Made by a program: the position numbers and the translations under genes. The notes beneath the pieces were generated by a model. It searched no databases. It saw nothing but the letters and a program-made list of their open reading frames with translations, and was not told where the DNA came from. Positions 6,693 through 60,745 of a DNA stretch of 64,000 nucleotides are shown one piece after another (positions within the stretch are counted from its first letter, which is position 1; every line of letters begins with the position of its first letter). Where the stretch lies: the sequence record MN091626.1; one strand, given 5' to 3'.

Positions 6693-6708
6693 AAATTTAT
6701 ATTATATA
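6693..6708 (+). promoter_or_regulatory. Putative early promoter
   Basis: AAATTTATATTATA upstream of 6752. Confidence 0.55.
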
Positions 6709-6751
6709 AGTGTAGTACATAATATTTATTTATAAGGAGAATGAATTAGAT

Positions 6752-8665
6752 ATGGCAAATGAAGAAATTGTTTTAGATTTAAAATTAGGTAAGTACAATG
6801 ATTATTTACACTCAGATAATTATTTTGAAATTTTAGATGATTTAAAGAAAGATATCATTGGTAATCCTCAAAAAAGAATGGAAGACTATTTTGAAGACAA
6901 TATACCCAAAAGTAATTATTTCACTTTATTAGTATTAGGTAAACCTTTTAGAGATATGAATAAAGAATTTACTGAAGAGTATTTAGTTAATCCAACCGAT
7001 ATTGATGATTATTATGACTATTTTGACAAAGTTGTTGTTAATTTTATTCATGAAGGTCATGATCCAATAAAAGTTAGTCAATCAATTGCATTTGTTATTG
7101 ACGAATTGACTATATTTTCAAATGAATATATTTTACCTTTAGATGGTCCATCTATTTCATTATATGATATTATGAGATTAGCTAATGAAGATAAAGAAAT
7201 AGAAAAATTAATTAACTTTGATAAAGAAGACATTGATCATAACTTAACATATCAACAAATCATTAATGAAGTTCAAAAACCGAATATGCATAAATTGATT
7301 GATCGTATTAAATCTGATAAAGAAAACGATTATAAAACTTTCTTACATTCAGGAACAGGTATTAATAAGATACAATTGAATGAGGTTTTAAGTTTTGTAG
7401 GATATAAACCAGACATTCGTGGTGATGTTGTAACTGATATTATTGATACTTCATTTATGCGTGGTTTAAAAGATACAACACAATTTGCTATTGATGCAGA
7501 ATCTTCATTAAACGCATTAATGAACTCTAAGAATAAAGTACGTGAATCAGGTTACTTAAACCGTAAAATTACTTTATTAACTTCAGACTTAAAACTATCA
7601 GAAACTGAAGATTGTGAAAGTAAACATTTCGTTTACGTTAATATGGATAGTCAAGATAAATTAGATAGATTTAATGATAGATTCTATTATGATGATACAG
7701 ATCAAGAATTAAAATTAATTAATTCTAAAGAAGACAGTCATTTAATAGGACAAATTGTTCCATTACGTTCACCTATTACATGTGCTGAATCTAAAGGAAA
7801 AATTTGTCAAACTTGTTATGGTAAACGTTTATATAACATTAATAGAAACTTATCTGTAGGTATATTAGCTACATTAAGATTAACAGAACCTATGACTCAA
7901 AAATTACTATCAACAAAACACTTACAGGCAGTACAATTATCTGAATTCTCTTGGCCAGATATCTTTAAAGAACACTTTGAATTCTCTGGAGATAATATTG
8001 TTCCACGTAATGAAAAGACTAAAGTTATTATTGATGAAATGATTATTAATGAAGATTATGAATATGGAAGATATAAAGCTAATAGTTTTAAATTTAAAGT
8101 AGGTACTAAAACTCATACTGTTAAATCACCTGTAACTCTTAAAATACCAGACCAAAATATTGAGACTATGGATAAATTTTATGATGAAGAAGAAAATGCA
8201 TTTATATTCAGTATGAAAGACTTAAAAGAGAATTTCTTATTTAATATTAAAATTAAAAATGAAGGCGTTGCTGACCCACTTCTTAAAATACGTTCTATAT
8301 TAGAAAGTACTAAATATATTAGAAATGACTATGAAGAAAATAATTATCAAGCTATGTTTAATGATGTAACAGATTTATTACTTAAATCAGGTACAGACGT
8401 TATGAGTGTTCATTTAGAAACTATTATTAGAAATATGGTATTCTTAAATGAAGATTATAAAGAAAGAACTAAATATAGAGACCCTGAATTTGAACCTGAT
8501 ATTGAATTGAAAAATGTAGGTAGTGCTATTTTAAGTTCACCTTCACCAGTTCAATCATTAATCTTTGAAAAGATTAAAGCTCAGTTAAGCACTGATGAAA
8601 CTAATAACTTCTTCAGTAAAGATGGAGATTCAATGTTCGATCCATTATTTGATTTTGATATTTAA
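6752..8665 (+). CDS. RNA polymerase beta-prime C-terminal subunit, probably non-virion RNAP
   Basis: SGYLNRK bridge-helix region, RSPITC..ICQTCYG zinc site, TEPMTQKLLSTKH trigger-loop region; size, early promoter and nearby SF2 helicase fit phiKZ gp74-like. Confidence 0.85.
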   Translation: MANEEIVLDLKLGKYNDYLHSDNYFEILDDLKKDIIGNPQKRMEDYFEDNIPKSNYFTLLVLGKPFRDMNKEFTEEYLVNPTDIDDYYDYFDKVVVNFIHEGHDPIKVSQSIAFVIDELTIFSNEYILPLDGPSISLYDIMRLANEDKEIEKLINFDKEDIDHNLTYQQIINEVQKPNMHKLIDRIKSDKENDYKTFLHSGTGINKIQLNEVLSFVGYKPDIRGDVVTDIIDTSFMRGLKDTTQFAIDAESSLNALMNSKNKVRESGYLNRKITLLTSDLKLSETEDCESKHFVYVNMDSQDKLDRFNDRFYYDDTDQELKLINSKEDSHLIGQIVPLRSPITCAESKGKICQTCYGKRLYNINRNLSVGILATLRLTEPMTQKLLSTKHLQAVQLSEFSWPDIFKEHFEFSGDNIVPRNEKTKVIIDEMIINEDYEYGRYKANSFKFKVGTKTHTVKSPVTLKIPDQNIETMDKFYDEEENAFIFSMKDLKENFLFNIKIKNEGVADPLLKIRSILESTKYIRNDYEENNYQAMFNDVTDLLLKSGTDVMSVHLETIIRNMVFLNEDYKERTKYRDPEFEPDIELKNVGSAILSSPSPVQSLIFEKIKAQLSTDETNNFFSKDGDSMFDPLFDFDI

Positions 8666-26802: not shown

Positions 26803-27970
26803 TTATAGCATATCTTTTACTTTACGTTTTAATTCTATTAAAGCTTTATTAGTGAAAAGCATTAAATAAATATCAGTAGTCATACGAGATACGATACTTA
26901 ATGGAGAGAATATAGCTTCAATTTCCTCGTCAGGTCTATATTCTGCATAAGGAGATTCATTAGGAGGAGTAACATCAGCAATAACTGTTTTACATGCTCC
27001 ATAGAAACTGATCTTATCACCAATACTCATATCATCTTCATACTCTGTGAAGATTTCAATAAGTACTCCATCTACTTTCTCACCTTTAATTTTCTCACTA
27101 TTAATTTTCTCTACAGCTGGAATATCTACATCTAATCCAGGTAATGTAGATTTATTATCTTTAACTGCATTTTTGTATTCTCTATATTTACTTTTAGATT
27201 TATTAATATAACTATTAACTAATTTAGCTAATGTAGGAGACATATTTTCAATATCATCATTATAATAGATATTTACTTTTTTAATTTCTCCAGTATATTT
27301 AGATCTAACAGCTCTATTAGAAATATCTTGTATTTCTTGTTCAAATTCAGAACCGATTTTATCTAATAAAGAACCAATACCTTCATCATCAAATGAATTC
27401 TCAAATATCATTAATGGATCTCCTGTACGTACATTTTGACCTTCTTTAACAATATATTGAATATTTGTATTAGAAGCTAAATTAACTGTTTTCTTCATAG
27501 TAACTTTAGTTGACATTGCTTCAGACATACTGTTAGAAATAATAGAACTATCTTCGTACGTGCCATAGCTTGAAGCAACTGCAACTTTAGATAATTTACC
27601 AGCAGCAAATTGAATATCATTATTACTGCCAGATCCTGCAAAGTAACTATCATTTTTAGCTAATACTTGTCCTTTATTAAATTTCTTACCTACTTCAAAT
27701 TGTGGAGTAAGTTTATTATTTTGATAGAAACCACCATTGGAGTTCTTAGCAAGTTTTTCAGATATATCAATTACATCTTTATCCCCATTAATGTATTCAA
27801 CAAGCATTAATCCTGTTTTCTCATTGATAGAAGTTACTTTACCATCTTCTTTAGCTTTAAAAGCAAAAGTATCTGAAATTTGATAGGCTAAAGCTTTATC
27901 TACACCAGATCCAACTAAAGGACGGTCATTTGTTTTAGTTGCTATCAGGTGTTTTGCCTGAGTACCGGTC
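26803..27970 (-). CDS. RNA polymerase beta subunit (probably virion RNAP), exon 2
   Basis: TGTQAKHL, YEDS, IGDKISFYGACKTVI, FSPLSIVSRMT; frame opens well upstream of the tracked ORF start 27807. Confidence 0.88.
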
Positions 27971-29270
27971 CGATATCTTCAACAGAGATCGTAAATCTCT
28001 GCCAGTTCTCTTATGAACTTCTTTAAGATTTCCTTAAAGTCTAGACTATATCTTCACCCTATATTTTTATAGGGGATCACTATTTCGATTTAAGGGATTT
28101 TCACCCACTCCATTAACTTGAGCCCTACTCCTGTTGGTATATTTCAATACCCTAAGGGATAGTCGTTGAGCTTTTTCCTAGACAATTTTCGATTTTTTCT
28201 TTTATTTTTCCTTCTTTTTGATCTTTATAATTTATTCTTATCAGATCTAATTTTTCATGATTTTTGAAATAATCATCTTTTATTTTATCATTCTGTTTTA
28301 AGGTTTCGAATTTTTCTTTACCATTTTTATATCTAAAAGGTATAAAGTGCTGCTCACCGTCAAATTCTATACAAAGATTATATTCTTCTAAAAAGAAATC
28401 AACTCTTAAATGATTTCCTTTTATACTGAAAAGATCATCAAATTTCTTTTCTTTTTCATAAGGTATTTTCATATTATCCAAATATTCAGATATTTCTTTA
28501 GTACCTTTTGAATTACTAATATCACTACAATGAGGACAGCGATGTCCTGATGAATAAAAACTTTCCCAATTCATCTTAAATTCTCTTCCGCATTCTTCAT
28601 GTAAGATATCCATTTTAGTTCTACTATTAGAATATGAATTTGAGACTAATTCATAATCAAATTTTTCTATATAATCTTTTACTTCTTTAAGGTTTTTCCT
28701 TTTATTAGGTGCACAATGAGGACAACCATAACCCTGCTGAAGATTACTGTATGTTGATTTGAACTCATTCCCACATAAAGAATGAAATATTAATAATTTC
28801 TTTTTACTGTTTTCATATTCACTCTTTAAAATATAAACATCCTTACCATGTAAGTCATTTAATTTTTCTTGTACAACTTCATTATCAACTACTCTTCCTG
28901 CACACTTAGGACATTTATAACCTTTAATAAAATTTGATGGTGCTACATCATATACATAATTACATTTTTTATGTTTTAGTTTTAATTTATTTTTGTATAA
29001 TTCGAAATCCTTTATGAAAATATATTCATCATAATGTTTTAATCTCTCTTTACATTTCTTATGGTATTCTTCTTGTTTATTCAATTATTTCCAACCTTTC
29101 TTACGAAAAGCTTGTCTAGGAACTTAGTTGCTGATCATCCAATCTTAATGATTTTTAAGCATATCACGCTTACTGTTACCAGTTACGTTGTAGCTCATTA
29201 AGCTCTAAGGACTTCCCAGCAATTAAATGATTTTATTACATATACATTACTGTATAAGGGGACAAAATTT
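27971..29270 (-). mobile_element. Group I intron in RNAP beta gene (1300 nt)
   Basis: P1 GGGAU/GUCCC with U.G; P, Q, R GCTCAACGACTA, S AAGATATAGTCT; terminal G27971; splice yields HADSPRIGMTGTQAKH. Confidence 0.92.
28152..29084 (-). CDS. Intron-encoded homing endonuclease, three zinc-ribbon repeats plus Vsr-like (EDxHD-type) nuclease
   Basis: H..C...C.CP.C repeats; RVDFF..IEFDGEQH..NDKIK; ORF end overlaps intron R element. Confidence 0.8.
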   Translation of the reverse strand: MNKQEEYHKKCKERLKHYDEYIFIKDFELYKNKLKLKHKKCNYVYDVAPSNFIKGYKCPKCAGRVVDNEVVQEKLNDLHGKDVYILKSEYENSKKKLLIFHSLCGNEFKSTYSNLQQGYGCPHCAPNKRKNLKEVKDYIEKFDYELVSNSYSNSRTKMDILHEECGREFKMNWESFYSSGHRCPHCSDISNSKGTKEISEYLDNMKIPYEKEKKFDDLFSIKGNHLRVDFFLEEYNLCIEFDGEQHFIPFRYKNGKEKFETLKQNDKIKDDYFKNHEKLDLIRINYKDQKEGKIKEKIENCLGKSSTTIP

Positions 29271-32200
29271 ATCCCTATTCTTGGACTGTCTGCATGTCTA
29301 CTAGTATATGGGTTTAATAATTCTAATGGAGTGTATAAAGCTGTATCACTTACATCTTTTTTATTACCATCAGTATAACCACGAGTAGATTTAATCTGTG
29401 TATCATATGAAAGTTGTCTAACTATTCCCACCTTATTAGAATCGGGAGTAGATATTCCTAATATACCTTGCATACTTTCGTCATAAGAACGAATATCAGG
29501 TTCATATGATTGTTCAGAGTTACGTCCAGCAGGACCTTTAAATGTAACAGAAGTCATCTTATCTATTTCTAAGTTAGGGTTTAAATCAGAAACTTCATCT
29601 ACTGTAGGTTGTTCCATAATAGTTTTAATTAATTGGTCTTGTTTAACTGAAATATTCTTAGGATTTTTATTATTATAAGAATCTGAATATTCTTTATAAG
29701 CATTTGCCATCATTTTATACAATAATGCGTTAATTTGCTCTGGTCCACGTACACGATAAATTCCCATATCATTATGATCTCTAGCTGAAACGTCTTCTAA
29801 CATTGTATTAGCTAATAGTAATAATTCAACCATATTATCAGGAAGTTTTAAATCTCTTAATACTTCTTTAGTAATAGGATCCATTGCTAAATCCATAGTA
29901 TTTTTAATACCTTTACCAACATTACGACTGTAGAATTTATCATTGAAATATTCTAAGTAAGGTGTTTCAGTTTCAAAATCACTGAAATTGTATTGTGAAG
30001 TAGGTAATACAGTTAATCCAGACATTAATAAATCAAATCTTAATTTATCAGTAGAGTATATTAAATAACCGTCTTGGAATTTAATCTTATTCTTTTTATC
30101 ATGAATGCTAATTCTTTCATTCTCAGTAGTAAATTTATAATCAACTTCATAAAGATCAAGAATATTAGTTAAACCTTTATAGAAACCTAATAATAGAATT
30201 GTAGGTACTAATTTATTAGTAATTTTAACACGTGAAAATGCCATCGTCTTATTAGATTGAATATTCTTACTGAATTTCTTATCAATAACTCCAAAGTCAA
30301 CTTCATTATCTAGTTTATCAATAATGTAATCAAATATATTTACTTCCATAGATTTAATATTAGATTTACTACATTCATACATAACAGATTCTGTTTTGTC
30401 TGCTAATATTAATTTAGATTTATTAATATTATACCCGATAGGGAAATATTTATCTTGATCATAATCAATCTTAGATAAACTAGCACTATCAGAAATCATT
30501 CCTAATAAACTTCTTTGGTTGAATTCAAGTACATTAGTGCCATCTTGGAAATTTAATATATTTCTAGATAAACTATTATAAATAACTGAAGTTACGTATT
30601 TATTATTAATTAAAGAAGCATTACCTTTTTTAACAGATAGGTTAGATTTATTTTCAATATAATCTATAACTTGGTCATCTTCAATAACTTTCTTAATCCA
30701 TTCAGTTTCAGCATTTTCTTTATAACCGAATTTTTCTATAATGAATTTATTATAGTTAGTTGTAATCCAAACAGTATCAGGTTTATATTTAACGATTGGC
30801 CACATCATTAACTGTTTAGTTAATACTTTTTTACCGCCATTAAGTTTCATATATTTACCGTCAATAACTTTAGGTACATCAAATTTAACATTATGAGTTA
30901 AACCATCTGGACTTCTAAATTGGACTTTAACTGTATTTTTTAATGACTGACTATCTGAATTATCTTCAATATTCATTTTATTAATAAATACTGGAATATC
31001 TTCATTGTCATTAAAGCTTTTCATTATATCAATAAAGTCTTTATTAAATGTTTTTTGCATATAAGAAATATCAAAATCATTAGAAGCAATATTGTTAATA
31101 GTCTCTTCATTGATATTATTAATATTTTCATTAATTTCTCTATCGATTAATTTATCTTCAGAAAAACTAAAATCTTCTAAATCATTAAGGTATTCATCTT
31201 GTTTCTTAGATAAAGCTAATATCTTTTTAGTATTTTTAAGAGCTTCATCACCAATACTAGATTTATTTTTAATATTTCTCTTAATTGATTTAAATGAATC
31301 ATTCTTGTCTAATACGTCTGAATATAAAGTTTCAGTATCAATATCAATTAAATCTTTATTATCATTTAATTCTTTTTCAATTATCATAGCTATATTATAT
31401 TCATCATCAACATCCATTTCAGTATTGTCTAATGATCTAATATAACTTATTGTAGAATCTATTTTATTAGATATTTTTTCTAGCTGTTCATCATTTTCAT
31501 ATTCAACTTCATCATTCTGAGCTTCAATAGGGTCAATTGTACCTACATTATCAAATGCTTTCTTTTTAATTACTCCATCTACAGCTTCAGTATTATCATC
31601 ATCTTCAACTTTACTAATTTCATCAGTATCCAATGCCTGTGTATTAGTGTCAATCATTCTTCTTAATCTTTGTCTAAGTCTCATATTAAGTTTATTATAA
31701 TCTTTGTAATCAAATTTAAACATTATTCCATTATCTAATGAGACAAATAATAAATTAACATTTTGATTTTCACCATGAGGTAATTCTTCTTGATTCTTAA
31801 TCATCATGAATAAGCTTGACATGAAATCTTTTGTATTAGGTCTAATAGCTTGTTGAGAAGGTTTATTATACCCATCAACATTAATCACATAAAGTAAATT
31901 ATTGTAATCTTCTGTATTATTTAAAGAGTTAAAAGTTGATTTAACTGAATCTAATACTGTATTAAAGTTTTTAGTCATTAATGATTTATCTTCTAAATCA
32001 ATAAATTTAGTTGAATCAACAATATAGTTTCTACCTTTAAATAATTTCTCATTTCGTTCAACTCTATACTGTTTATAAGATTTAGATTTAATTTCTTTTT
32101 GATAATCTGTTATATTCGTTAATAATCTAGTTCTTCTATTTTGAGTTCTATACAATCTTGGTGTATAGATATTCTTGAAATTCTGATGATATAATAATCC

Positions 32201-32356
32201 ACTATTTAAGAAATCAGTAAATGAATTTTCTTTAAAACCTTTATAAATAACTAACTGGTCTTTTTTCTTATCTTTGATTTCTTCATCAATAGCTTTAATT
32301 TTATATCCAGATATTGAATAGAATTTAAGATTTTTTAATCTATTAAGATATTTCAA
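29271..32356 (-). CDS. RNA polymerase beta subunit (probably virion RNAP), exon 1; spliced product 1417 aa
   Basis: YMKLNGGKKV, YRVRGPE, FKGPAG, STPDSNKVGIVRQL, HADSPR; size like phiKZ gp178. Confidence 0.88.
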
Positions 32357-45732: not shown

Positions 45733-46464
45733 TTATGATTTAATTCCATCAGATTCTCTTAATTTATCAATTAATTCTATAAATTCATTGTATTTCTTAT
45801 CTACAATTTTAAGATAATTATATTGAGAATTAGAAGCAACTTCATCTTTTTTCTTTTCTTTTAATTCATCACGTTTTTGGTAGTGATTATTTTTACCTTT
45901 AATTTCTATTAATAAATTAAAATCAGGAAGATAAAAATCAGGCATGTAGAAATGTTTCTTATTAGCAAACGTATAAGGAATAGCTATATTAGAAGGAGAT
46001 AATACATTATTAGATTTAAAATCCATTTGTTTATCTAAGAATTCTAAGAAATCTTTTTCATAAGATCCGACATATTGAGTAGGTAAACCTTTGCCAGAAC
46101 TCCAATGATATTTGCCTGAAATTCTTCTATTTTCTAACATTTTATTTTGCATTTCAGGGTCATTTAATAAAGTAGTCTTACCGTATTTTTTATTCATTCT
46201 ATCTTTAAATTGTTGTCTATATTTATCTTTACATACTTTATCATGTACACGTTCATACTTTTCAGTTTGTTCATTAAATTTAGTAGGTTTACCGCATATA
46301 ATGCACGTACCATGAGTTTTCTTATTTCTGAAATTAAAATATACATTAGCTGCAGATAATTCACCTAATTCTTTTTCATGAAATTTCTCCATATGATTAT
46401 AAAGACCTTTTTTATCTACATATTTCTTTGTACAGAATGGACATTTATGATATTTTGTAGCCAT
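45733..46464 (-). CDS. Zinc-finger PD-(D/E)XK nuclease, TnsA/T4 gp4 head-completion-like
   Basis: C2H2 finger, YVGSYE, IPY..HFYMPDF..IEIKG; late promoter. Confidence 0.65.
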   Translation of the reverse strand: MATKYHKCPFCTKKYVDKKGLYNHMEKFHEKELGELSAANVYFNFRNKKTHGTCIICGKPTKFNEQTEKYERVHDKVCKDKYRQQFKDRMNKKYGKTTLLNDPEMQNKMLENRRISGKYHWSSGKGLPTQYVGSYEKDFLEFLDKQMDFKSNNVLSPSNIAIPYTFANKKHFYMPDFYLPDFNLLIEIKGKNNHYQKRDELKEKKKDEVASNSQYNYLKIVDKKYNEFIELIDKLRESDGIKS

Positions 46465-46504: not shown

Positions 46505-46516
46505 TAAATGCTTGTT
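46505..46516 (-). promoter_or_regulatory. Putative late promoter AACA-N6-TA
   Basis: AACA-AGCATT-TA. Confidence 0.65.
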
Positions 46517-49207: not shown

Positions 49208-50950
49208 ATGTTAGATAAGAATAAAGAAAAGAAGAAATTAGTTTCAAATATTGTAGATGAAGATTCATATAAAGATATAGCTGAATTAACTATTGATACT
49301 ATTTCAAATACGTTAATGAAATCATTAGGTTATTTCGGATCTACAACTATTTTTGATGATGGTATTAGTAGATATGTAACTAAAGACGGTTATAATATCC
49401 TAAAAAATATTAGATTTCAAGATACAATCGCTACAGCTATTTTGAATTTTATTAAAGAAGTATCGTTATCATTAGTTAAATCAGTGGGAGATGGATCAAC
49501 TTCATCAGTAATTAACTCACAAGCTATGTTTAAAGAAATTAATAAAAGACTAAAAGAAAAAGATGATTTAGGTGGATATTCTCGTAAAGAAATTTCTGAT
49601 TCATTAAATAATATGAAAGAATTAATTTCTAAAGAATTAACTTCAAAATCTACTAAAATTGATCAAGATAATTTCCATAAATTAAAAAATATCGCTACAG
49701 TATCTAATAACAATGATGAAAAATTAGGAGAAATGGTTTATGAAATTTTCTCTAAAATTGGTAATAAAGGTTTTATATTCCCTGAAGTTTCTGATAATGA
49801 AGAAGACCATTATTCATTAACTAGAGGTATTGAAACACCACATGCATTATTAGATAATAAATTAATTAATAATAAAGATGATCATTCAGTTGATTTTAGT
49901 AAACCTTATGTAGTTGTTGTTAATGATAAACTAACTGAAGAAGATATTGTATGGACATCAAATATTATTTCTAAAATTAAACCTTTCTCAGGACAAGGAT
50001 TAATATTCTTTGCTCCAGCTTTTTCTAAAGAGTTTAAAGATTATATTAAAAATAATTTACATGCTAATAGAAATAATGGTTCATTACAAGCAGTTGAAAC
50101 TGACTTTGAATTATCTATTGGTTCTCATTATCATGATCCAGAAAAATTAGAAGATTTAGCTATATATACAGGTGGATCTATTATTGATAAAACTATGGAA
50201 AAAGAAGATTTCTATAAACAAGTTGAGTCTATTGTAGAACTTCCTGAAAATGACCCAGAATGGTTATTATTTAAAGAAACGGTAATTGGTAGAGCTGAAA
50301 GAATTACTATTGATAATTTTAAAACACAAATTATTAATGGTTACGGTAATGGTACTCAAAAACTTAAAGATAGAATTTCAGAAATTAATAATGAAATAAC
50401 TTATTATACTGATATGAATTCAGATCAAGCTATTACAGCTATTACTGATTTACAAAAACGAGCAAATTCTTTAAATAATGCTATTGCTAAATTATACGTT
50501 GGTGGTTCTTCTCAAGCAGAAAAAACTTCTAGACTATACTTAGTAGAGGATTCAGTACATGCTTCTAAATCTGCTTTAGAATACGGTTATGTATCTGGAG
50601 GTAACTTATCAGTAAATAAAGTTATTAAAAATATCAATAGAGACGTTTTAAGTGATTTAGATAATCTGACATTAGATTTAATTGATATATCTTCAAGAGA
50701 AGTTTATCATAAAGTATTAGAAAACTTTAATAGATTTAGTTCAGGAGAAATTGAATCTATCACTCAAACTTGTATAGATAAAGATGCTATATTGAATATT
50801 AAAAATAATGAATATGAAGATGATGTTAATACAGATATTATCAACTCAGTAGAAACAGATATCAAAATATTAGAAACAACTATTAGTATTATAGGATTGA
50901 TTTCATTAAGTAACCAATTCTTAACTAATTCAGTCATTATTCCACAATAA
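49208..50950 (+). CDS. groEL: Phage chaperonin (GroEL-like)
   Basis: SLGYFGS, TKDGYNIL, VGDGSTS, LYVGG, EDSVHASKSALEYGYVSGG. Confidence 0.9.
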   Translation: MLDKNKEKKKLVSNIVDEDSYKDIAELTIDTISNTLMKSLGYFGSTTIFDDGISRYVTKDGYNILKNIRFQDTIATAILNFIKEVSLSLVKSVGDGSTSSVINSQAMFKEINKRLKEKDDLGGYSRKEISDSLNNMKELISKELTSKSTKIDQDNFHKLKNIATVSNNNDEKLGEMVYEIFSKIGNKGFIFPEVSDNEEDHYSLTRGIETPHALLDNKLINNKDDHSVDFSKPYVVVVNDKLTEEDIVWTSNIISKIKPFSGQGLIFFAPAFSKEFKDYIKNNLHANRNNGSLQAVETDFELSIGSHYHDPEKLEDLAIYTGGSIIDKTMEKEDFYKQVESIVELPENDPEWLLFKETVIGRAERITIDNFKTQIINGYGNGTQKLKDRISEINNEITYYTDMNSDQAITAITDLQKRANSLNNAIAKLYVGGSSQAEKTSRLYLVEDSVHASKSALEYGYVSGGNLSVNKVIKNINRDVLSDLDNLTLDLIDISSREVYHKVLENFNRFSSGEIESITQTCIDKDAILNIKNNEYEDDVNTDIINSVETDIKILETTISIIGLISLSNQFLTNSVIIPQ

Positions 50951-50958
50951 AACTTATT

Positions 50959-50990
50959 GCCGAAACCATTTGAACATTAATGGTTTCGGC
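50959..50990 (+). terminator. Rho-independent terminator
   Basis: GCCGAAACCATT/AATGGTTTCGGC plus T tract. Confidence 0.75.
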
Positions 50991-51119
50991 TTATTTTTGT
51001 GAATATAATTATCTTAATAATCTTTTTTACAAAATTAGATTTTTATGATTTTTTATTTGCTTTTTTGCTAATTTTTTGTTATAATTAAAAATATATTAAG
51101 CAGGAGGAATTATATAAAA

Positions 51120-51893
51120 TTGACTAATTTTACAGCTTCTCAATTTCTCAAAAACCCTACAGGAAAAGGTTCAGCTACAGTAGCTAGACGTGATAGAATC
51201 ATATTAGATATGAGAACTAGATTTTCTTATCTTTATAAAAAGAATAGAAAGAATTTTAAATTAAAAATATTCTTATATCAAGATAAATACTATTTCTATT
51301 TCCAAATACCTTCAGAAGATTATTTTAAAGAGAATCTATCTTATGATGTTATTATTGAATTTAGACCACCTAATGAAAGAGCAGCTAAAGCAAAAGATCT
51401 TAATAATTACTTAATAAGATTTATTAGTAATTCACCTAACTTTATGTTCACATATGGTTATTTATATAATAAAGATGATTTACTAATAAGTTGGTTAAGT
51501 TATAAATTAGGACCTAAAGCTTTAAATCAACCTCCAGAAGTTAGAAACCCTAGACTTGAATATGGTTTTGAGAAATCAGTTTATTTTGCACTTTTGTATT
51601 TAGAGACTAACCCTAAAGCATTAAAAAATCCGCTTCATTTGACATTACCTAACAGACAAAGAATTAAAAGTTCTTTCAAATCTTCAGAATTAAAATTACG
51701 TGAATACAATAAGATTAAAAAACAGAAAAATGCTTCTAAGAAAAACTCATCAGGTATTAAAAGACAAATAAGTAATCGTGTCGATAAAAGAAATGAAGAA
51801 AAGAAAAGAGTAACTAAACCTATTAATAGAAAAGTTAAACCTATAGGTAAGGTTAAAAAAGTTAAGAAGACTAACTCTATAAAACGAAAATGA
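51120..51893 (+). CDS. Hypothetical protein with basic C-terminus
   Basis: AGGAGG SD, 257 aa, K/R-rich tail. Confidence 0.75.
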   Translation: MTNFTASQFLKNPTGKGSATVARRDRIILDMRTRFSYLYKKNRKNFKLKIFLYQDKYYFYFQIPSEDYFKENLSYDVIIEFRPPNERAAKAKDLNNYLIRFISNSPNFMFTYGYLYNKDDLLISWLSYKLGPKALNQPPEVRNPRLEYGFEKSVYFALLYLETNPKALKNPLHLTLPNRQRIKSSFKSSELKLREYNKIKKQKNASKKNSSGIKRQISNRVDKRNEEKKRVTKPINRKVKPIGKVKKVKKTNSIKRK

Positions 51894-51899
51894 TTTATT

Positions 51900-51913
51900 A
51901 AATATATATTATA
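51900..51913 (+). promoter_or_regulatory. Putative early promoter
   Basis: AAATATATATTATA. Confidence 0.6.
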
Positions 51914-51969
51914 TAAATGATAAATAATACTTATTTATCATAATTATTATTTAAGGAGAGTGCCTGATA

Positions 51970-53703
51970 TTGGATAAAGTTAAAGAATTAGAGTACAAAG
52001 AGGATTTAGATTTAAAAAAGATTGATGAATTAGTTAATAATGACGTGGAAGTACCCCTATTATCTAGTAATGTCAATAAGCTTAAAAGAGTCTCTGGTAA
52101 TTTTGAATTAACTAATGAATACATTAATTCTAAAGACTTAGATACACTTGAAAGAAAAAATAAAAATGGTAAAATTGAATTGGAGTACATACAGAGAACA
52201 GATATTCTACCATTAGTTAAATTTATTGAAAGTGAAAAGAATGATACTATATTTATAGATTTCAATAAGATATTAGAAACTGATAATCGTAAAGTACCTA
52301 AGGATGAAGAGTTTGATAATATATTTACTATTCAAATTAAACAAAGATCTTACAAGAGTATTTTAGATTATATTGTAAATGATATGAATTTTATAGTTAA
52401 TGAGATTCCTCACATAATGATTAAAGGTGCTACTATATTAAGTAAGATAGCTAAATTAAGAGAGAATTATAAAGAAGAAGATTTCTTCAGAGATATTCAG
52501 AATATTATTGAAGATGAAGATTTAAGAAATGTTATTAGAAATATTGTTGATAATAACTATACAATTAATTTAGATCAAACTAATGCTGAAGCTATGTTAC
52601 AAAGTAAGAAAGTTATTAAGAGAGATTTACAGGTAACTGACCAAGTAAATAAATCATTCTTATCTACAGCTGTAATGCAAAGATTTATTATTCCGTTTAT
52701 TAGTCAATATTATGTAACTACTAATAAGTATCATTGTGAAAATTCTGATGCAGATAAGGAAAGAACTAAAAACGGTTACTTTAAAGCATTTAATTATTGT
52801 ATGTGTATTTCTTCATTCGATTATAATGTAAGTAATAATAATAAACTTTATAAAATTGTAGAACCTAAAGTAATTAAAACAAAATACAATGATAGAGTTA
52901 TTTGGAGATTCTTAGATTTACGTTCAATTGACCCTGACACTGTTATTAATAAAATAATGGATAAAATCATTAGACAAATTGTATGTAAATTATTAGTAGA
53001 TACTTCTGCAGTATCTTACTTTACGTCTGTTATTAAATTCTCAATCGATTATGAATTCCAGTACAAATATCCAATTAAGTTTAGATCAATACGTCTATCT
53101 ACAGATGATGACGATGATGAAGATAGCTTCGATAAATTCCAAATGAATAACTTCCATAAAGTTAATGAACGTTTAGATTTAGCTAATAAAATCACTATTG
53201 ATAGATTTATTAATGAACGTTTAGAAGAATTAAATATTAGTGATGATTACATTAATCGTTTATATGATAAATTTGATTATATTAATGACTTACAATCTCA
53301 TTTAATTAAAGTTTATTTTGCTGAATACTTTAACGTTAATACAAATGATAGAAAGAGCATTGTTTCATTACTGGCTATTATGTCTAAAGAACTTATTGAT
53401 AATAATATGGAAACTTTAGGAAAAATAGTAGCAAGTAAAGTTGTTTCAGGTACAAAAGCTAAAAATGTAGGCAAATTATCATTAGACGTAATTGCAGATA
53501 AATATTATATTGCTGCTTGGGATAAATATAGATTTATCAATGATATTACTGAAAAAGATAACTTTATCTTACGTATAGCATTAGTAAATGGTTATTCATT
53601 TAACTTTACTCCTGAAGATAAAGAAGAAGATGAAGAAGTTATTGCTGATATTGATAAGAAATACTTTATCTCTGAAGTATCACAATTTATTTCTCAATAC
53701 TAA
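51970..53703 (+). CDS. Candidate sigma-like promoter-specificity subunit of non-virion RNAP
   Basis: SYFTSVIKFSI (sigma 2.3/2.4-like), RLSTDDDDDEDSFDKF (sigma-finger-like); two genes from chaperonin; early promoter. Confidence 0.5.
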   Translation: MDKVKELEYKEDLDLKKIDELVNNDVEVPLLSSNVNKLKRVSGNFELTNEYINSKDLDTLERKNKNGKIELEYIQRTDILPLVKFIESEKNDTIFIDFNKILETDNRKVPKDEEFDNIFTIQIKQRSYKSILDYIVNDMNFIVNEIPHIMIKGATILSKIAKLRENYKEEDFFRDIQNIIEDEDLRNVIRNIVDNNYTINLDQTNAEAMLQSKKVIKRDLQVTDQVNKSFLSTAVMQRFIIPFISQYYVTTNKYHCENSDADKERTKNGYFKAFNYCMCISSFDYNVSNNNKLYKIVEPKVIKTKYNDRVIWRFLDLRSIDPDTVINKIMDKIIRQIVCKLLVDTSAVSYFTSVIKFSIDYEFQYKYPIKFRSIRLSTDDDDDEDSFDKFQMNNFHKVNERLDLANKITIDRFINERLEELNISDDYINRLYDKFDYINDLQSHLIKVYFAEYFNVNTNDRKSIVSLLAIMSKELIDNNMETLGKIVASKVVSGTKAKNVGKLSLDVIADKYYIAAWDKYRFINDITEKDNFILRIALVNGYSFNFTPEDKEEDEEVIADIDKKYFISEVSQFISQY

Positions 53704-53788: not shown

Positions 53789-54949
53789 TTACCTATTTAA
53801 TTCTCCTTCAAATAAATAGTCTATATTAATGTAAGTTCTTTCAAATATTTCTTCATTAAGTCTTTTAATCTCATTAGGATCATTAAAATCTATTATTTGA
53901 GAAGATAATATATTTTGAATTTTACTTCCATCAATTTCATCAACTATATGAGGATGATTGAATAGTTTAAACCTCTTAATTAGTTCTTCTAACTTTTCTT
54001 CTTTTAATTCATTTTCAAATAGCTTTCTTAAAGATGATTCATTATTATATTCTTTTAAAGGAGATAATTTTAAATCAGATATCATTTTATCTAATAATTT
54101 TACAGTTGATACTGGACCATAGCTTGGAATTGATTTATATTCTTGATCTTTATGTTCCATAAATAAGTTATATAAGTCTAAGATATTATAATCTATATTA
54201 ACAAAATCGTTAATATCTTTTTTAGTACTAGAGCTAAATAATTCGTCTTTAATATTCTCTTTAGTTATTACTTTACTCTTTTCTGATCCACGTAGTTCTA
54301 ATAATAATAATCTATCTTTATATTTTAATAACTGTCTATATATTTTATCGTTACTAACTATTAATGAATAATCATCATCATTTTCAATATTAGTTTTAGA
54401 TAATATATAATAAGGTAATATAGTTGGTTCTATTTTATAAGTGTCTATAAAATATGCGTTAGGTATATATTTAACTATAGTTTTAACTAATTCTAAAGTT
54501 GATTTAATAGTCTTATTAGTATCTCTATAAGTTATATTGTCTTTATCCATCTTTTTATAATATTCTTTCTTATACCCTTCATCAATATTAGTATGATATA
54601 TTGACTCTTTATCTGAATAGAATAGGAAGAATCTACTATGCATATTTAATCTACTAGCGAAGAAATGTCTATAATGCCCTATTATATTAACTAATTCAAC
54701 AACTAAATTCAATCTATCTTTAGTTTTTACGTGTGTAAAATTTTCAGCTATTTGAGGTGAATATAATTGTTTAATAACTGAATTTAAATCTACATATATA
54801 GTTACATTATCATTTTTAGTATTACTACCAAATCTACCTCCTTCTACATAAGGTCTAACTAACTCAGTCATTTTGTTATAATTTAATTTTTTAGAGTTTA
54901 TTATACGTTCTATTATACTAATATCCATATGTATTCCACATCCTTTCAT
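53789..54949 (-). CDS. 5'-3' exonuclease / flap endonuclease-like protein
   Basis: IYVDLNS, LIVSND, H3TH-like SIPSYGPVSTVKLL. Confidence 0.6.
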   Translation of the reverse strand: MKGCGIHMDISIIERIINSKKLNYNKMTELVRPYVEGGRFGSNTKNDNVTIYVDLNSVIKQLYSPQIAENFTHVKTKDRLNLVVELVNIIGHYRHFFASRLNMHSRFFLFYSDKESIYHTNIDEGYKKEYYKKMDKDNITYRDTNKTIKSTLELVKTIVKYIPNAYFIDTYKIEPTILPYYILSKTNIENDDDYSLIVSNDKIYRQLLKYKDRLLLLELRGSEKSKVITKENIKDELFSSSTKKDINDFVNIDYNILDLYNLFMEHKDQEYKSIPSYGPVSTVKLLDKMISDLKLSPLKEYNNESSLRKLFENELKEEKLEELIKRFKLFNHPHIVDEIDGSKIQNILSSQIIDFNDPNEIKRLNEEIFERTYINIDYLFEGELNR

Positions 54950-55008
54950 TGTTATAATATATAATTATATATTAATTCGTAATTTTATAAAAATTGATAT
55001 TACCTAGT

Positions 55009-55020
55009 AACATTCACTTA
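55009..55020 (+). promoter_or_regulatory. Putative late promoter AACA-N6-TA
   Basis: AACA-TTCACT-TA. Confidence 0.65.
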
Positions 55021-55055: not shown

Positions 55056-56330
55056 TTGATAGAAAGCTTGATTACTAAAAAAATATTTAATATAAAATTA
55101 ATAGCATTATATTCAGATGGAACTACTGATGATTTATCTCAATTTATTAAAAGATCTAGAATAGAAATGAACTTCCAAGAATATATTATGCCATACTATA
55201 GATTTATATTAAGATTGCCTAAAGAGACTATAATTAAGATTAATAAAGATAGAGACAAAGTAGTATTTTCTTTTTCTTCAGATATGATTACTACTGATGC
55301 TGAAAGTGAAAGTTTATCTGTCCCTTTTTATGAAGAAATAATATTAAAACCGTTAATGGATTTAAGTAATCCAGTTAATTATGATGATAGAGTGACTAGA
55401 ACTGATGAAGATCAAAAACATTTATTTGATAGATATGAGTTAGTTGCTATATCTGAAGAAACGTTAAAAACTAATAAACCTATAGTTTCAGGTATCTATA
55501 ATAACTGTACTGTCAGTGAAGTAGTCACTGATCTATTAAGTAATTTAAAAAATAGAGAAATATACTTACACGAAATAGATAATAACAAAATATATGAACA
55601 GATTATATTACTTCCTGCAAACGTATATGATAATATAAAATTTATTGATGACGTATACGGTATATATAATAGGGAAATTAAGATGTTTAACCATGAAACA
55701 GGATTAAATATTTTACCAATGTCTGGATTTGATCCTAATGAGATAGGTAAAGTTAAAGTAGAAATAAGATTTCCATCAAATCAAACTGATGAAGAAATCA
55801 TAGAAGGATCTTACGAGCAAATATCTGAGGAAGATGACTTAGTTAGAAATAAAAATATAGTAACAAGAATTAATAATGTATCTCTAGTAGATAATACAAG
55901 ATTATTTAATGAATTAATCGGTTCAGAAATTAATTTATTTGGAATGGATAATGAGACAGAATACACTAAATTAAATACATATCGTAGAGATATGGAAGAT
56001 AGAAATGGACCTATTAATAAAGTTAAAGTATATGACGATATTTATGATAATCCTTATAGTTTAGAAAAAGAATTTAATAATAGTAAAGATATAATATTAA
56101 AGATACAGTTAAATGATATCGATTTGACTATGGAAGATACTTTTAAGCAATTTGATATAGAGTTCTTTAATGAATATTATAAACACTATAACGGTTTTTA
56201 TGAATTATTATCTATTAATCAAGAATATAAAAATGCAAGTAAAGCTTTAGTCTTATCAAACTATGTTACATTAAGAAAGATAACTGATCATACATTTATT
56301 AAGAATGATAAAAATAATCCCAATACCTAA
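55056..56330 (+). CDS. Putative virion structural protein
   Basis: 424 aa, late promoter. Confidence 0.6.
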   Translation: MIESLITKKIFNIKLIALYSDGTTDDLSQFIKRSRIEMNFQEYIMPYYRFILRLPKETIIKINKDRDKVVFSFSSDMITTDAESESLSVPFYEEIILKPLMDLSNPVNYDDRVTRTDEDQKHLFDRYELVAISEETLKTNKPIVSGIYNNCTVSEVVTDLLSNLKNREIYLHEIDNNKIYEQIILLPANVYDNIKFIDDVYGIYNREIKMFNHETGLNILPMSGFDPNEIGKVKVEIRFPSNQTDEEIIEGSYEQISEEDDLVRNKNIVTRINNVSLVDNTRLFNELIGSEINLFGMDNETEYTKLNTYRRDMEDRNGPINKVKVYDDIYDNPYSLEKEFNNSKDIILKIQLNDIDLTMEDTFKQFDIEFFNEYYKHYNGFYELLSINQEYKNASKALVLSNYVTLRKITDHTFIKNDKNNPNT

Positions 56331-58018: not shown

Positions 58019-59050
58019 TCAGAAACTAATATTAAAATCAGTTTCTAATTCTTTTCCTATTTCTGCATCTATTTGTTCTGATTCTGATTTACCTTGAACT
58101 TCAGCTACTCCAGAATCAATATCAATTTTATCAGCTAATTTATTTAAACGTTCAGTAGCTTTATTTTGTTTTTCACGTGATCTATCTGATAAATCATTAT
58201 TTTGTTCACCTTCAATGATTTTAACAGCTTCACGTAAATATTCAGCTATATCTGAACGAGTTTTAATTACTTTAATATAAGCTTGTTTTGTTAAATATAA
58301 AGCTAGCATAGAACCTGCAATAACCATTATAGAAATGCTGCCGTATTTAATAGTTTTTTCTGACATTTTTAAGTATTTATTATCTTTAGCTTTTTTAGCT
58401 AAATCTACTATATCATCAAAACTAAATTCTTCATTAGCACTTACAAAAGAGCCATCAAATTTAAAAATTTCTTTAAGCTTTCCTGCTTTATACATTTTTA
58501 AAACATTTTCCAAAGTATTTACTTCTAAAGAATTTTTATTTTTAAGTTTTTTACCATCAAATTGTAATTTACCATCTTCATTACTAAATCCTAAGAAGAA
58601 TAATTGTGAAGTTAATAACATAACTGTTGATGCTAAAGTAGTATAAACGATTTGACCAACTTCATTACCATTATTAAAACATTTTTTAAAGTTATTTTTT
58701 TCTTTTTCAAGTAAGTTTACAGAATTCTCAATAGTATCAAAAACGGAAATAAGTTTAGGGTCAAAGCTATTAGATTTTTGACTTTTTATGTATTTAAAAG
58801 TCTTTTCAAAATCTTTATAAGCTTTAACCTTTTTAAAATCGCCTTTACTAGAAAGGATCGATTTTAAATTTTTATTTCCAGATTTTTTCAACATTTTTTC
58901 AGATGTTTTAGAGATTGCAACCGAAAGAGCTTCCATTTTTTCTTCTGGTTCTAATCTTTTAAAAGGTCTGAATGGTAAAGAGAATTCCTGTAAAACTCTT
59001 TGTGTCATTGCATCTTCAGTTAGAAGATGTTTTCTTTCAAGAAGTTCCAC
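58019..59050 (-). CDS. Putative head protein
   Basis: 343 aa, late promoter, LLTED motif. Confidence 0.55.
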   Translation of the reverse strand: MELLERKHLLTEDAMTQRVLQEFSLPFRPFKRLEPEEKMEALSVAISKTSEKMLKKSGNKNLKSILSSKGDFKKVKAYKDFEKTFKYIKSQKSNSFDPKLISVFDTIENSVNLLEKEKNNFKKCFNNGNEVGQIVYTTLASTVMLLTSQLFFLGFSNEDGKLQFDGKKLKNKNSLEVNTLENVLKMYKAGKLKEIFKFDGSFVSANEEFSFDDIVDLAKKAKDNKYLKMSEKTIKYGSISIMVIAGSMLALYLTKQAYIKVIKTRSDIAEYLREAVKIIEGEQNNDLSDRSREKQNKATERLNKLADKIDIDSGVAEVQGKSESEQIDAEIGKELETDFNISF

Positions 59051-59145: not shown

Positions 59146-59157
59146 TAAATTTTTGTT
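59146..59157 (-). promoter_or_regulatory. Putative late promoter AACA-N6-TA
   Basis: AACA-AAAATT-TA. Confidence 0.6.
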
Positions 59158-59227: not shown

Positions 59228-60697
59228 TTAACGTTTTAATAATTTTTCAAGCATTTCTGAAGTTAAATCTTTTTGATTATTCTTAACTTTGTAAGCACCA
59301 AGTTTATTTTCTTTAATAACTTCAAATTTGTTATGATCTGGTAAATATTTATAAACTAATTCCCTAGTTTGGTCTAATATAATAAAATCTAATAAGAAGA
59401 ATTCATTATAAATTTTCTTAGCAGCTCTACGGTCAGATAATAAATCCACACCAGTTTTACGTTTAACTTCATTAGCTTCATCAATAGTAATCATTAAAGC
59501 TGTTGTTGGAATATAGTTAGCTTTAGCTGATTTAGCAATTCCTGAAGCTTTATTAACAGAGTAGAGAGAATTTAATTTGTTCCAAATAGAACCAGAACGT
59601 CCTTTTTTAGAGTCTTGTGCAATTTTCTTAACTTTATCAGCGTCCAATAATAAATCTTTAACTAGACGTAATTCACCTGTAGTAAATTTAACTAATTTAG
59701 TTACTAAGTTTGAGCCACGAGATTTATCAGAAAGATAGAAAATGATGTCTTCAGTTTTAACAACATGAACTACTGTCTTAACACCGAATTTAGTATCCTT
59801 CTGAATATAATTTGAAGCTGGAAGAGGATTACCATTTTTATCTGCAGGTACATAGTTAATTGTAGTTGTTATCGTAGTAGGTAAAGAAGCATTTATTTTT
59901 TCTTTATCTATAGTAACTTTTGCTCCAAAATTATCTCTTTCTGCATCTTTAATAGTAGTAGTAACTTGACCTTTATAATCTTCACTGAATTTTCTTTTTA
60001 ATTCAGAATTTTTTTCTATAGTGTCGCCATTACTTGATTTTAATCTACCGTCAAATACTGAATTTATATTTCTATTAGAACTTTCTGACATATTATTAAA
60101 TTTAAATTCTTTCTCTTTACCATCTTTAAATTCAAGTATTTCTAAATTATAAGTTTTATTTGTATTCTTTGATAATTCAAAATCATTTATATCAAATCTA
60201 ATATCATATTTTACACCATTGGCTTTTACTGCATAACCGCTATTTGATTCATTTAATAGTTCTTTCATTTCTTCTCTAGTGATAGTCATATCATTTAAAG
60301 AATTCATATTAAATTTTTCTTCAGGAGTTTCTAATAAATAATCATTGGATCTTTTAATATCCTCTTTTGTACTTTCAGCTAAATTTACATTATTATGCAA
60401 ATCAGACATAAATGAAGTAGGATCTTTCGGATCAAAAGTTTGTAACGGTGAATTCGTTAATACAAAATCAAACTCAAAAGCTCTCTCTAATTCTAATTGG
60501 TTTCTCATTAATTCAACTGTGTCTTGTTCTATAGTATCAGATGTAACTAAAGGAAACTGTAGTATAAAATCTCCAGATCTTTGCTTTAATGATCTTTTTC
60601 TTTTGTTATTATCTTTATAGTTTTTACTTATACTTGTAGGATTTAAATCTTTTAAAAGACCTATTACATCCGTAAATAAGTTTACTTTATTGGCCAA
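59228..60697 (-). CDS. Putative virion structural protein
   Basis: 489 aa, late promoter. Confidence 0.6.
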   Translation of the reverse strand: MANKVNLFTDVIGLLKDLNPTSISKNYKDNNKRKRSLKQRSGDFILQFPLVTSDTIEQDTVELMRNQLELERAFEFDFVLTNSPLQTFDPKDPTSFMSDLHNNVNLAESTKEDIKRSNDYLLETPEEKFNMNSLNDMTITREEMKELLNESNSGYAVKANGVKYDIRFDINDFELSKNTNKTYNLEILEFKDGKEKEFKFNNMSESSNRNINSVFDGRLKSSNGDTIEKNSELKRKFSEDYKGQVTTTIKDAERDNFGAKVTIDKEKINASLPTTITTTINYVPADKNGNPLPASNYIQKDTKFGVKTVVHVVKTEDIIFYLSDKSRGSNLVTKLVKFTTGELRLVKDLLLDADKVKKIAQDSKKGRSGSIWNKLNSLYSVNKASGIAKSAKANYIPTTALMITIDEANEVKRKTGVDLLSDRRAAKKIYNEFFLLDFIILDQTRELVYKYLPDHNKFEVIKENKLGAYKVKNNQKDLTSEMLEKLLKR

Positions 60698-60733: not shown

Positions 60734-60745
60734 TAAAGATATGTT
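60734..60745 (-). promoter_or_regulatory. Putative late promoter AACA-N6-TA
   Basis: AACA-TATCTT-TA. Confidence 0.65.

Follow-up and report, generated by a model that had tools for sequence, protein, structure and literature searches.

The 577-residue protein of Staphylococcus phage PALS_2 is very probably the orthologue of AR9 gp226, the sigma-like subunit of the non-virion RNA polymerase

Bacillus phage AR9 has a non-virion multisubunit RNA polymerase (nvRNAP) whose fifth subunit, the sigma-like gp226, has been characterised structurally and biochemically. Here we consider a 577-codon open reading frame (ORF), positions 51970-53703 of a 64,000-nucleotide (nt) stretch of record MN091626.1 (Staphylococcus jumbo phage PALS_2; the whole stretch is called the window below), and compare its product with gp226. 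According to Fraser et al. (2022; PMC9209446), gp226 consists of a unique N-terminal domain, a sigma2-like domain (residues 184-264), a sigma-finger-like element (265-294), a sigma4.1-like helix (295-316) and a C-terminal domain carrying a basic ‘pseudo -35’ motif. In AR9 the pocket for the template-strand -10 deoxyuridine is formed by the 2.1bis helix together with the beta-N subunit gp105: V206 of gp226 clashes with the methyl group of thymine, and the base is held between I207 of gp226 and R363 of gp105. The -9 G is stacked upon by Y210 and read by the main chain of F261 and Y263, and the non-template groove residues S245/Y246 influence recognition of double-stranded templates (PMC9209446). 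The same authors aligned twelve gp226 homologues, citing Staphylococcus phages, and found the critical valine to be absolutely conserved in jumbo phages with deoxyuridine DNA (PMC9209446).

In phage phiKZ, gp68 takes the same place in the holoenzyme and has related N- and C-terminal folds, with an identity to gp226 of 9-11%; it works on thymine DNA and, unlike gp226, is needed for enzyme assembly (PMC9209446). With respect to the bacterial sigma70 family (e.g. E. coli sigmaE), the AR9 equivalent of residues ~288-421 of the 577-residue protein can be superimposed on sigma2, the finger and helix 4.1, and its contacts with the core are made in the same way (PMC9209446). Unlike bacterial sigma70, the AR9 enzyme recognises the template strand and needs deoxyuridine. 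For phages of Staphylococcus, the host of PALS_2 in distinction to AR9, Korn et al. described five nvRNAP subunits in the MarsHill-like group, one of them a ‘specificity determinant’, and also reported an AR9-like early motif (bioRxiv 10.1101/2020.12.14.422802).

We conclude, with a probability of about 0.93, that the 577-residue protein is the PALS_2 orthologue of AR9 gp226, i.e. the sigma-like fifth subunit of the nvRNAP. Such a role had been suggested in a preliminary description of this DNA made from the letters alone. Orthology is indicated by homology over ~470 residues combined with a gene neighbourhood and an early promoter that are shared with AR9. In the PHROGs database the protein matched phrog_25005 ‘RNA polymerase’ (E-value 1.5e-53, profile positions 12-445 of 464). 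A sequence search of the PDB returned the 464-residue AR9 gp226 (7S01_A, E-value 3.2e-40; also chain A of 7UM0 and 7UM1), and in the single-sequence alignment residues 115-554 of the query were paired with chain residues 30-447 at ~30% identity. When a family profile built from seven relatives (seven sequences) was used instead, the E-value against 7S01_A reached 1.7e-64, with profile positions 83-553 aligned to chain residues 4-444; thus the AR9/PBS1 protein is covered from residue 4 to residue 444.

Pfam and NCBIfam contained no family for this protein and no sigma domain in it, which may be why the preliminary description called it unannotatable; the PHROGs and 7S01_A matches, as well as near-identical proteins that do carry an annotation, refute that statement. 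A sub-threshold Pfam match to T3S N0 (E-value 0.028) was judged to be noise. Sigma chains were absent from the results of the PDB sequence and profile searches. Unlike sigma70, the protein has neither a Pfam sigma domain nor a helix-turn-helix for the -35 element, and its relation to the sigma70 family is structural only, as reported for gp226.

A Foldseek search with the AlphaFold2 model of the whole protein gave 7s01_A (E-value 4e-14) and 7um0_A (1.5e-12) as the sole matches at E-value ≤0.001, followed by a third gp226 chain, 7um1_A (1.9e-3). As independent evidence the match is weak, since the model is poor (template modelling score, TM, 0.30-0.37) and Foldseek also scores sequence. The comparison with gp226 and gp68 that had been recommended as a check thus came out positive for the gp226 chains, with gp68 unmatched. 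The latter protein was found by none of the sequence, profile and Foldseek searches, as could be expected from its published identity to gp226. These data bear on the possibility that the gp226 homologue acts like gp68, that is as an obligatory structural subunit required for an elongation-competent assembly rather than as a dissociable specificity factor. Although gp68 and gp226 share folds and differ in exactly this property (Fraser et al., PMC9209446), and although an N-terminal extension described below could add contacts to the core, we regard such a role as improbable: the protein is far closer to gp226 (E-values 1e-40 to 1e-64), gp68 escapes detection by both sequence search and Foldseek, and the residues recognising deoxyuridine are kept.

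The neighbourhood of the gene also speaks for orthology to gp226. The genes follow one another as do g233 to g226 of AR9: an endonuclease gene on the minus strand, a baseplate wedge gene, three small or unknown genes, a GroEL-like gene, a g227-like gene and the gene in question (Table 1). The preliminary description had placed the gene two positions from the chaperonin; it lies two positions after it, and this is indeed the arrangement of g228 (GroEL) and g226 (RNA polymerase subunit) in AR9. In Listeria phage LPJP1 the order is GroEL, one gene and then the gp226 homologue.

The early promoter claimed earlier is present as well. It is an exact match to the AR9 early consensus, AAATATATATTAT-N6-G (PMC5312081), from which transcription is predicted to start at G 51919, 51 nt ahead of the start codon. 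With up to one mismatch allowed, this motif occurs 10 times in the window, compared with 0.85 occurrences expected and at most 3 in any of 100 shuffles. It is also found before the orthologues in Madawaska, PB50, AH12, SA1 and AR9 (six phages in all), where the flanks have diverged; in AR9 an early promoter is annotated directly before g226. No late-type motif was seen upstream of the gp226 orthologue in the six phages. Given the conserved early promoter and the absence of a late motif upstream, we consider the gene to be an early one; early expression is what one would expect if the polymerase containing this subunit takes over late transcription.

Table 1. Coordinates, within the window, of the gene, its parts, its control signals and related features
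Feature	Position	Strand	Remarks
Coding sequence, 577 amino acids	51970..53703	+	TTG start; orthologue of AR9 gp226; PALS2_268 in the PALS_2 record
Shine-Dalgarno AAGGAG	51954..51959	+	10 nt ahead of the TTG start
Early (virion RNA polymerase type) promoter AAATATATATTAT-ATAAAT-G	51900..51919	+	exact match to the AR9 early consensus
N-terminal extension, residues ~1-82	51970..52215	+	profile alignment: gp226 residue 4 at position 83
Sigma2-like domain, residues ~288-368	52831..53073	+	aligned to gp226 184-264
2.1bis helix VIWRF, residues 310-314	within the sigma2-like domain	+	aligned to gp226 VIWTY
SYFTSVIKFSIDYEF, residues 349-363	53014-53058	+	aligned to gp226 245-259, in the sigma2-like domain
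Sigma-finger-like element, residues 369-400	53074..53169	+	aligned to gp226 265-294; acidic tip DDDDDED
RLSTDDDDDEDSFDKF, residues 375-390 (acidic)	53092-53139	+	aligned to gp226 270-285, in the sigma-finger-like element
Segment after the finger, with K496, K498, K502	53170..53700	+	alignment to gp226
GroEL-like chaperonin (AR9 g228)	49208..50950	+	phrog_5725, E-value 1.8e-94; AR9 and Madawaska annotation
g227-like gene	51120..51893	+	phrog_20045, E-value 1.5e-56; position as in AR9
nvRNAP beta-prime C-terminal subunit	6752..8665	+	PDB 7s00_D, E-value 4.2e-82
Candidate late promoter AACATTCACTTA	55009..55020	+	36 nt before the gene at 55056
Candidate late promoter	46505-46516	-	AACA-N6-TA motif
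Candidate late promoter	59146-59157	-	AACA-N6-TA motif
Candidate late promoter	60734-60745	-	AACA-N6-TA motif

The identification itself is already known. It can be found in GenBank (Madawaska, Machias and PB50), in Korn et al. (2021), in Fraser et al. (2022) and in the gene table of phage vB_SauM-UFV_DC4 (DC4), so that the novelty implied by the preliminary description was mistaken. The orthologues of Madawaska, MarsHill, Machias, PB50 and DC4 are 77-100% identical to the PALS_2 protein and have the same length and position. They bear the names ‘non-viral RNA polymerase specificity subunit’ or ‘DNA-directed RNA polymerase subunit’: specificity subunit in Madawaska (98.4% identical), PB50 and Machias, non-viral RNA polymerase subunit in MarsHill, and ‘DNA-directed RNA polymerase subunit’ for UFVDC4_00088 of DC4 (577 residues, 100% identical). 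Only the PALS_2 record, where the gene is ‘hypothetical’, and the PALS_2 paper, which names just four RNA polymerase genes, miss the subunit. As a discovery the result is of little value, given how well this subunit is characterised in AR9; what remains of a finding that is correct but known is a corrected PALS_2 annotation, comparative support for late promoters and the N-terminal extension.

The correction concerns both name and start. In the PALS_2 record PALS2_268 begins 25 codons later, at the internal GTG 52045 (PALS_2 256793), and has 552 codons for amino acids, while the orthologues in Madawaska, PB50, AH12 and SA1 are annotated from the TTG (51970) and the DC4 gene table also gives 577 residues. 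The Shine-Dalgarno sequence before TTG 51970 is conserved (AAGGAG or GAGGAG, together with the TTG start, in five of the five Staphylococcus phages compared), and none precedes GTG 52045. The ORF given in the preliminary description is real. As the ribosome site before the TTG is conserved, it is most likely the long form of 577 residues that is translated. PALS2_268 should be re-annotated as the nvRNAP specificity subunit with its start at TTG 51970 (window coordinates). The window was compared with MN091626.1 directly over 16,001 bases (offset 204748) and showed 0 mismatches; an apparent 4.9-kb difference between the two was dismissed after this comparison. Phage S6, a close relative, is 99.1% identical to the window over 16 kb.

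Judged by alignment, the parts of the protein come in the order known from gp226: unique N-terminal domain, sigma2-like domain (including the 2.1bis helix), putative finger, sigma4.1-like helix and a C-terminal domain with a putative basic patch. The two motifs singled out in the preliminary description are both present, and by the gp226 alignment they fall into the sigma2-like domain and into the sigma-finger, the counterpart of sigma region 3.2. In the same alignment V206, I207 and Y210 of gp226 correspond to V310, I311 and F314; S245/Y246 correspond to the identical S349/Y350, and F261 and Y263 to Y365 and Y367, aromatic in both proteins. V310 and W312 are invariant in the seven-sequence alignment. 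At the site of the gp226 basic residues R389, K390, R394, K395 and K396 we found K496, K498 and K502, and a 30%-identical relative (P0009) likewise has three basic residues there; the site thus stays basic among relatives. The protein departs from gp226 in its length (577 versus 464 residues), due to the extension and to an insertion of ~15 residues around 247-275, as well as in the changes of Y210 to F and of F261 to Y and in the reduced basic motif. The finger-like segment 369-400 was delineated by alignment only; AlphaFold confidence, expressed as the predicted local distance difference test (pLDDT), is <50 in this segment, one possible reason being that in AR9 it lies inside the polymerase cleft.

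Residues 291-398, comprising the sigma2-like domain and finger, are under the strongest purifying selection in the gene, with a ratio of nonsynonymous to synonymous substitution rates (dN/dS) of ~0.05 versus ~0.1-0.2 elsewhere; there are 0 amino acid changes in this region relative to Madawaska. By tblastn against phage genomes the gene was found at one place in each of 21 records (Staphylococcus 10, Bacillus 8, Yersinia 2, Listeria 1). A scan of IMG/VR for relatives gave 89 pattern matches, with 0 relatives confirmed. That the gene is a degenerate or repurposed copy without a place in any polymerase is hardly credible in view of this single copy per genome, the strong purifying selection and the preservation of early promoter, ribosome site and functional residues.

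The beta-N partner of the predicted pocket was identified as PALS2_088, which is located outside the window and is 33% identical to gp105 (E-value 4e-80); R363 of gp105 is aligned with R384 of PALS2_088. Homologues of beta-N were detected in 21 phage records, with the same breakdown by genus as for the gp226 homologue. Inside the window the nvRNAP is represented by the beta-prime C-terminal subunit, and an early-promoter match with one mismatch (6693-6712) is situated just upstream of its gene. The 631-residue AR9 chain 7S00_D matches both this protein and the C-terminal halves of bacterial beta-prime. The preliminary description had proposed to co-fold the 577-residue protein with this beta-prime C-terminal subunit. 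In bacterial RNA polymerase, however, the main contacts of sigma2 and the finger are with the N-terminal half of beta-prime, and the subunits expected to make contact in PALS_2, beta-prime N and beta-N, are both encoded outside the window. Binding to the core would follow from the homology to the AR9 holoenzyme, whose structure is solved.

As to the promoters recognised, the preliminary description proposed the AACA-N6-TA motif. This part of the proposal is supported indirectly, by the preserved recognition residues and by conserved promoter-like motifs, while an overall excess of the motif was not found. Four intergenic sites were compared across the diverged sister phages Madawaska, PB50, AH12 and SA1, with AR9 added for one site; they lie upstream of the late-looking genes 45733-46464, 55056, 58019-59050 and 59228-60697. 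At these sites AACA and TA are kept and the spacer changes. Over the whole window, the 100 nt upstream of genes contain 13 matches to the late motif in the sense orientation versus 4 in antisense (5.6 ± 2.5 in shuffles). For eleven non-coding matches the predicted transcription start is located 32-55 nt before the start codon. It is orientation, position and conservation between phages, not density, that support the late motif, which is too short to stand out in DNA of 25% GC content. The comparison lends support, short of proof, to the view that promoters of the AR9 type may be used for late transcription in Staphylococcus jumbo phages.

One could still imagine a gp226 homologue with diverged specificity, reading a motif other than AACA-N6-TA or having no uracil requirement. 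The low identity, the changes of Y210 and F261 and a possible asparagine in place of beta-N K375 would agree with this, as would the lack of excess density and the failure of Korn et al. to detect a late motif de novo (bioRxiv 10.1101/2020.12.14.422802). We think a change of this kind very unlikely. VIW, the critical valine with its neighbours, is the same in both proteins. Orthologous intergenic sites keep AACA-N6-TA in spite of variable spacers, one of the sites being common with AR9. In addition, Korn et al. state that uracil DNA was reported for S6 and that the DNA of MarsHill-like phages behaves as if substituted with uracil (bioRxiv 10.1101/2020.12.14.422802).

Several observations weigh against the assignment of the protein as the gp226 orthologue and its proposed function. 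Identity to gp226 is only ~30%, and the AlphaFold model is poor (mean pLDDT 54 for the whole protein), the sigma2-like and finger region being modelled without confidence. The pseudo -35 motif keeps only three of five basic residues, and beta-N K375 is aligned with N397 of PALS2_088, with K396 adjacent and a gap nearby. The density of the late motif, counted as AACA-N6-T[A/G], was 1.19 per kb per strand in non-coding DNA, with 1.15-1.38 expected on the basis of composition. Finally, a search of sequencing runs for RNA at this locus gave one run with contigs only, matching 6% of the sampled words and not recorded as RNA. The assignment to the gp226 family draws on homology, synteny and the promoter, and the mechanism is taken by analogy from work on AR9.

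Following this analogy, the injected virion RNA polymerase would transcribe the gene early in infection from the AAATATATATTAT-N6-G promoter. The 577-residue protein would then join the four split beta and beta-prime subunits, and its sigma2-like domain would form, together with the beta-N subunit, a pocket taking the template-strand -10 deoxyuridine, with V310 keeping out the methyl group of thymine and F314 stacking on the -9 G. The acidic finger could enter the catalytic cleft, and the C-terminal basic patch could hold upstream duplex DNA without sequence preference. The resulting holoenzyme would start late transcription at AACA-N6-TA promoters on the uracil DNA of the phage. In this scheme the N-terminal extension of ~80 residues, absent from AR9, would be an add-on.

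This extension is the one feature of the protein that has no earlier description, and it is worth an experiment. It is present in the Staphylococcus and Listeria proteins and missing in AR9 gp226. Its head, residues 1-28, is acidic or charged and varies between phages, with indels that are in frame; conservation begins at residue 29 (PLLSSN...), and Y51, L57, R76 and D78 do not vary, even in a relative of 30% identity. Purifying selection acts on the extension (dN/dS ~0.2), albeit in a more relaxed way than on the rest of the protein, and pN/pS is 0.4-0.7 for residues 2-25. The AlphaFold2 model of residues 1-122 has the same pLDDT as that of the whole protein, 54, and both are too poor for a description of the fold. 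Pfam showed nothing that would account for the extension, and an ESM Atlas search with residues 1-118 gave no usable match. It is possible, though on the doubtful side, that the extension is a functional regulatory module, either an acidic autoinhibitory head similar to sigma1.1 or a docking site for a phage or host factor. If so, the sigma-like subunit would be subject to a layer of control not found in the AR9 enzyme.

Among other observations, the divergent intergenic region 54947-55020 combines a minus-strand early-promoter match (54947-54966, one mismatch), belonging to a g220-like gene, with the conserved plus-strand late motif at 55009-55020 for the gene at 55056. The mechanically derived ORF start at 54949 overlaps this early promoter; therefore, the gene probably starts a few codons further downstream, in agreement with the annotation of Madawaska.

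Directly after the GroEL-like gene there is a perfect hairpin with a 12-bp stem (50959-50990), at the place where Madawaska has an annotated terminator. It was called terminator-like on both strands, with a clear T-run on the plus strand only (TTATTTTTGT). A host-type look-alike promoter, TTGCTT-N17-TATAAT with an extended -10 (TGnTATAAT), was seen at 51057-51085 (+), before the g227-like gene at 51120; it is kept in Madawaska, PB50, AH12 and SA1, with a spacer that varies. One would not expect such an element in phages of a family whose transcription is thought to be independent of the host RNA polymerase. As no terminator was found between the g227-like gene and the sigma-like gene, the look-alike could also feed the latter.

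The annotation of LPJP1 divides the gp226 homologue into two adjacent coding sequences (L003 3977-5125 and 5204-5599), although tblastn covers query residues 40-574 in one piece; the split may reflect a frameshift, a sequencing error or mis-annotation. Phage DC4 is reported to have a sigma70 factor; a Pfam scan of eight ORFs of the window did not reveal one. Within the window an RNA polymerase beta-like gene also seems to be split, by a zinc-ribbon/DUF4379 ORF (26803-27807, 28152-29084 and 29198-32356, all on the minus strand), so that Rpb2 domain 6 is found in a 334-residue ORF separated from a 1052-residue ORF. At the corresponding place DC4 has a single coding sequence of 1417 codons for the virion RNA polymerase beta subunit, which suggests that an intron or a mobile endonuclease was inserted in PALS_2.

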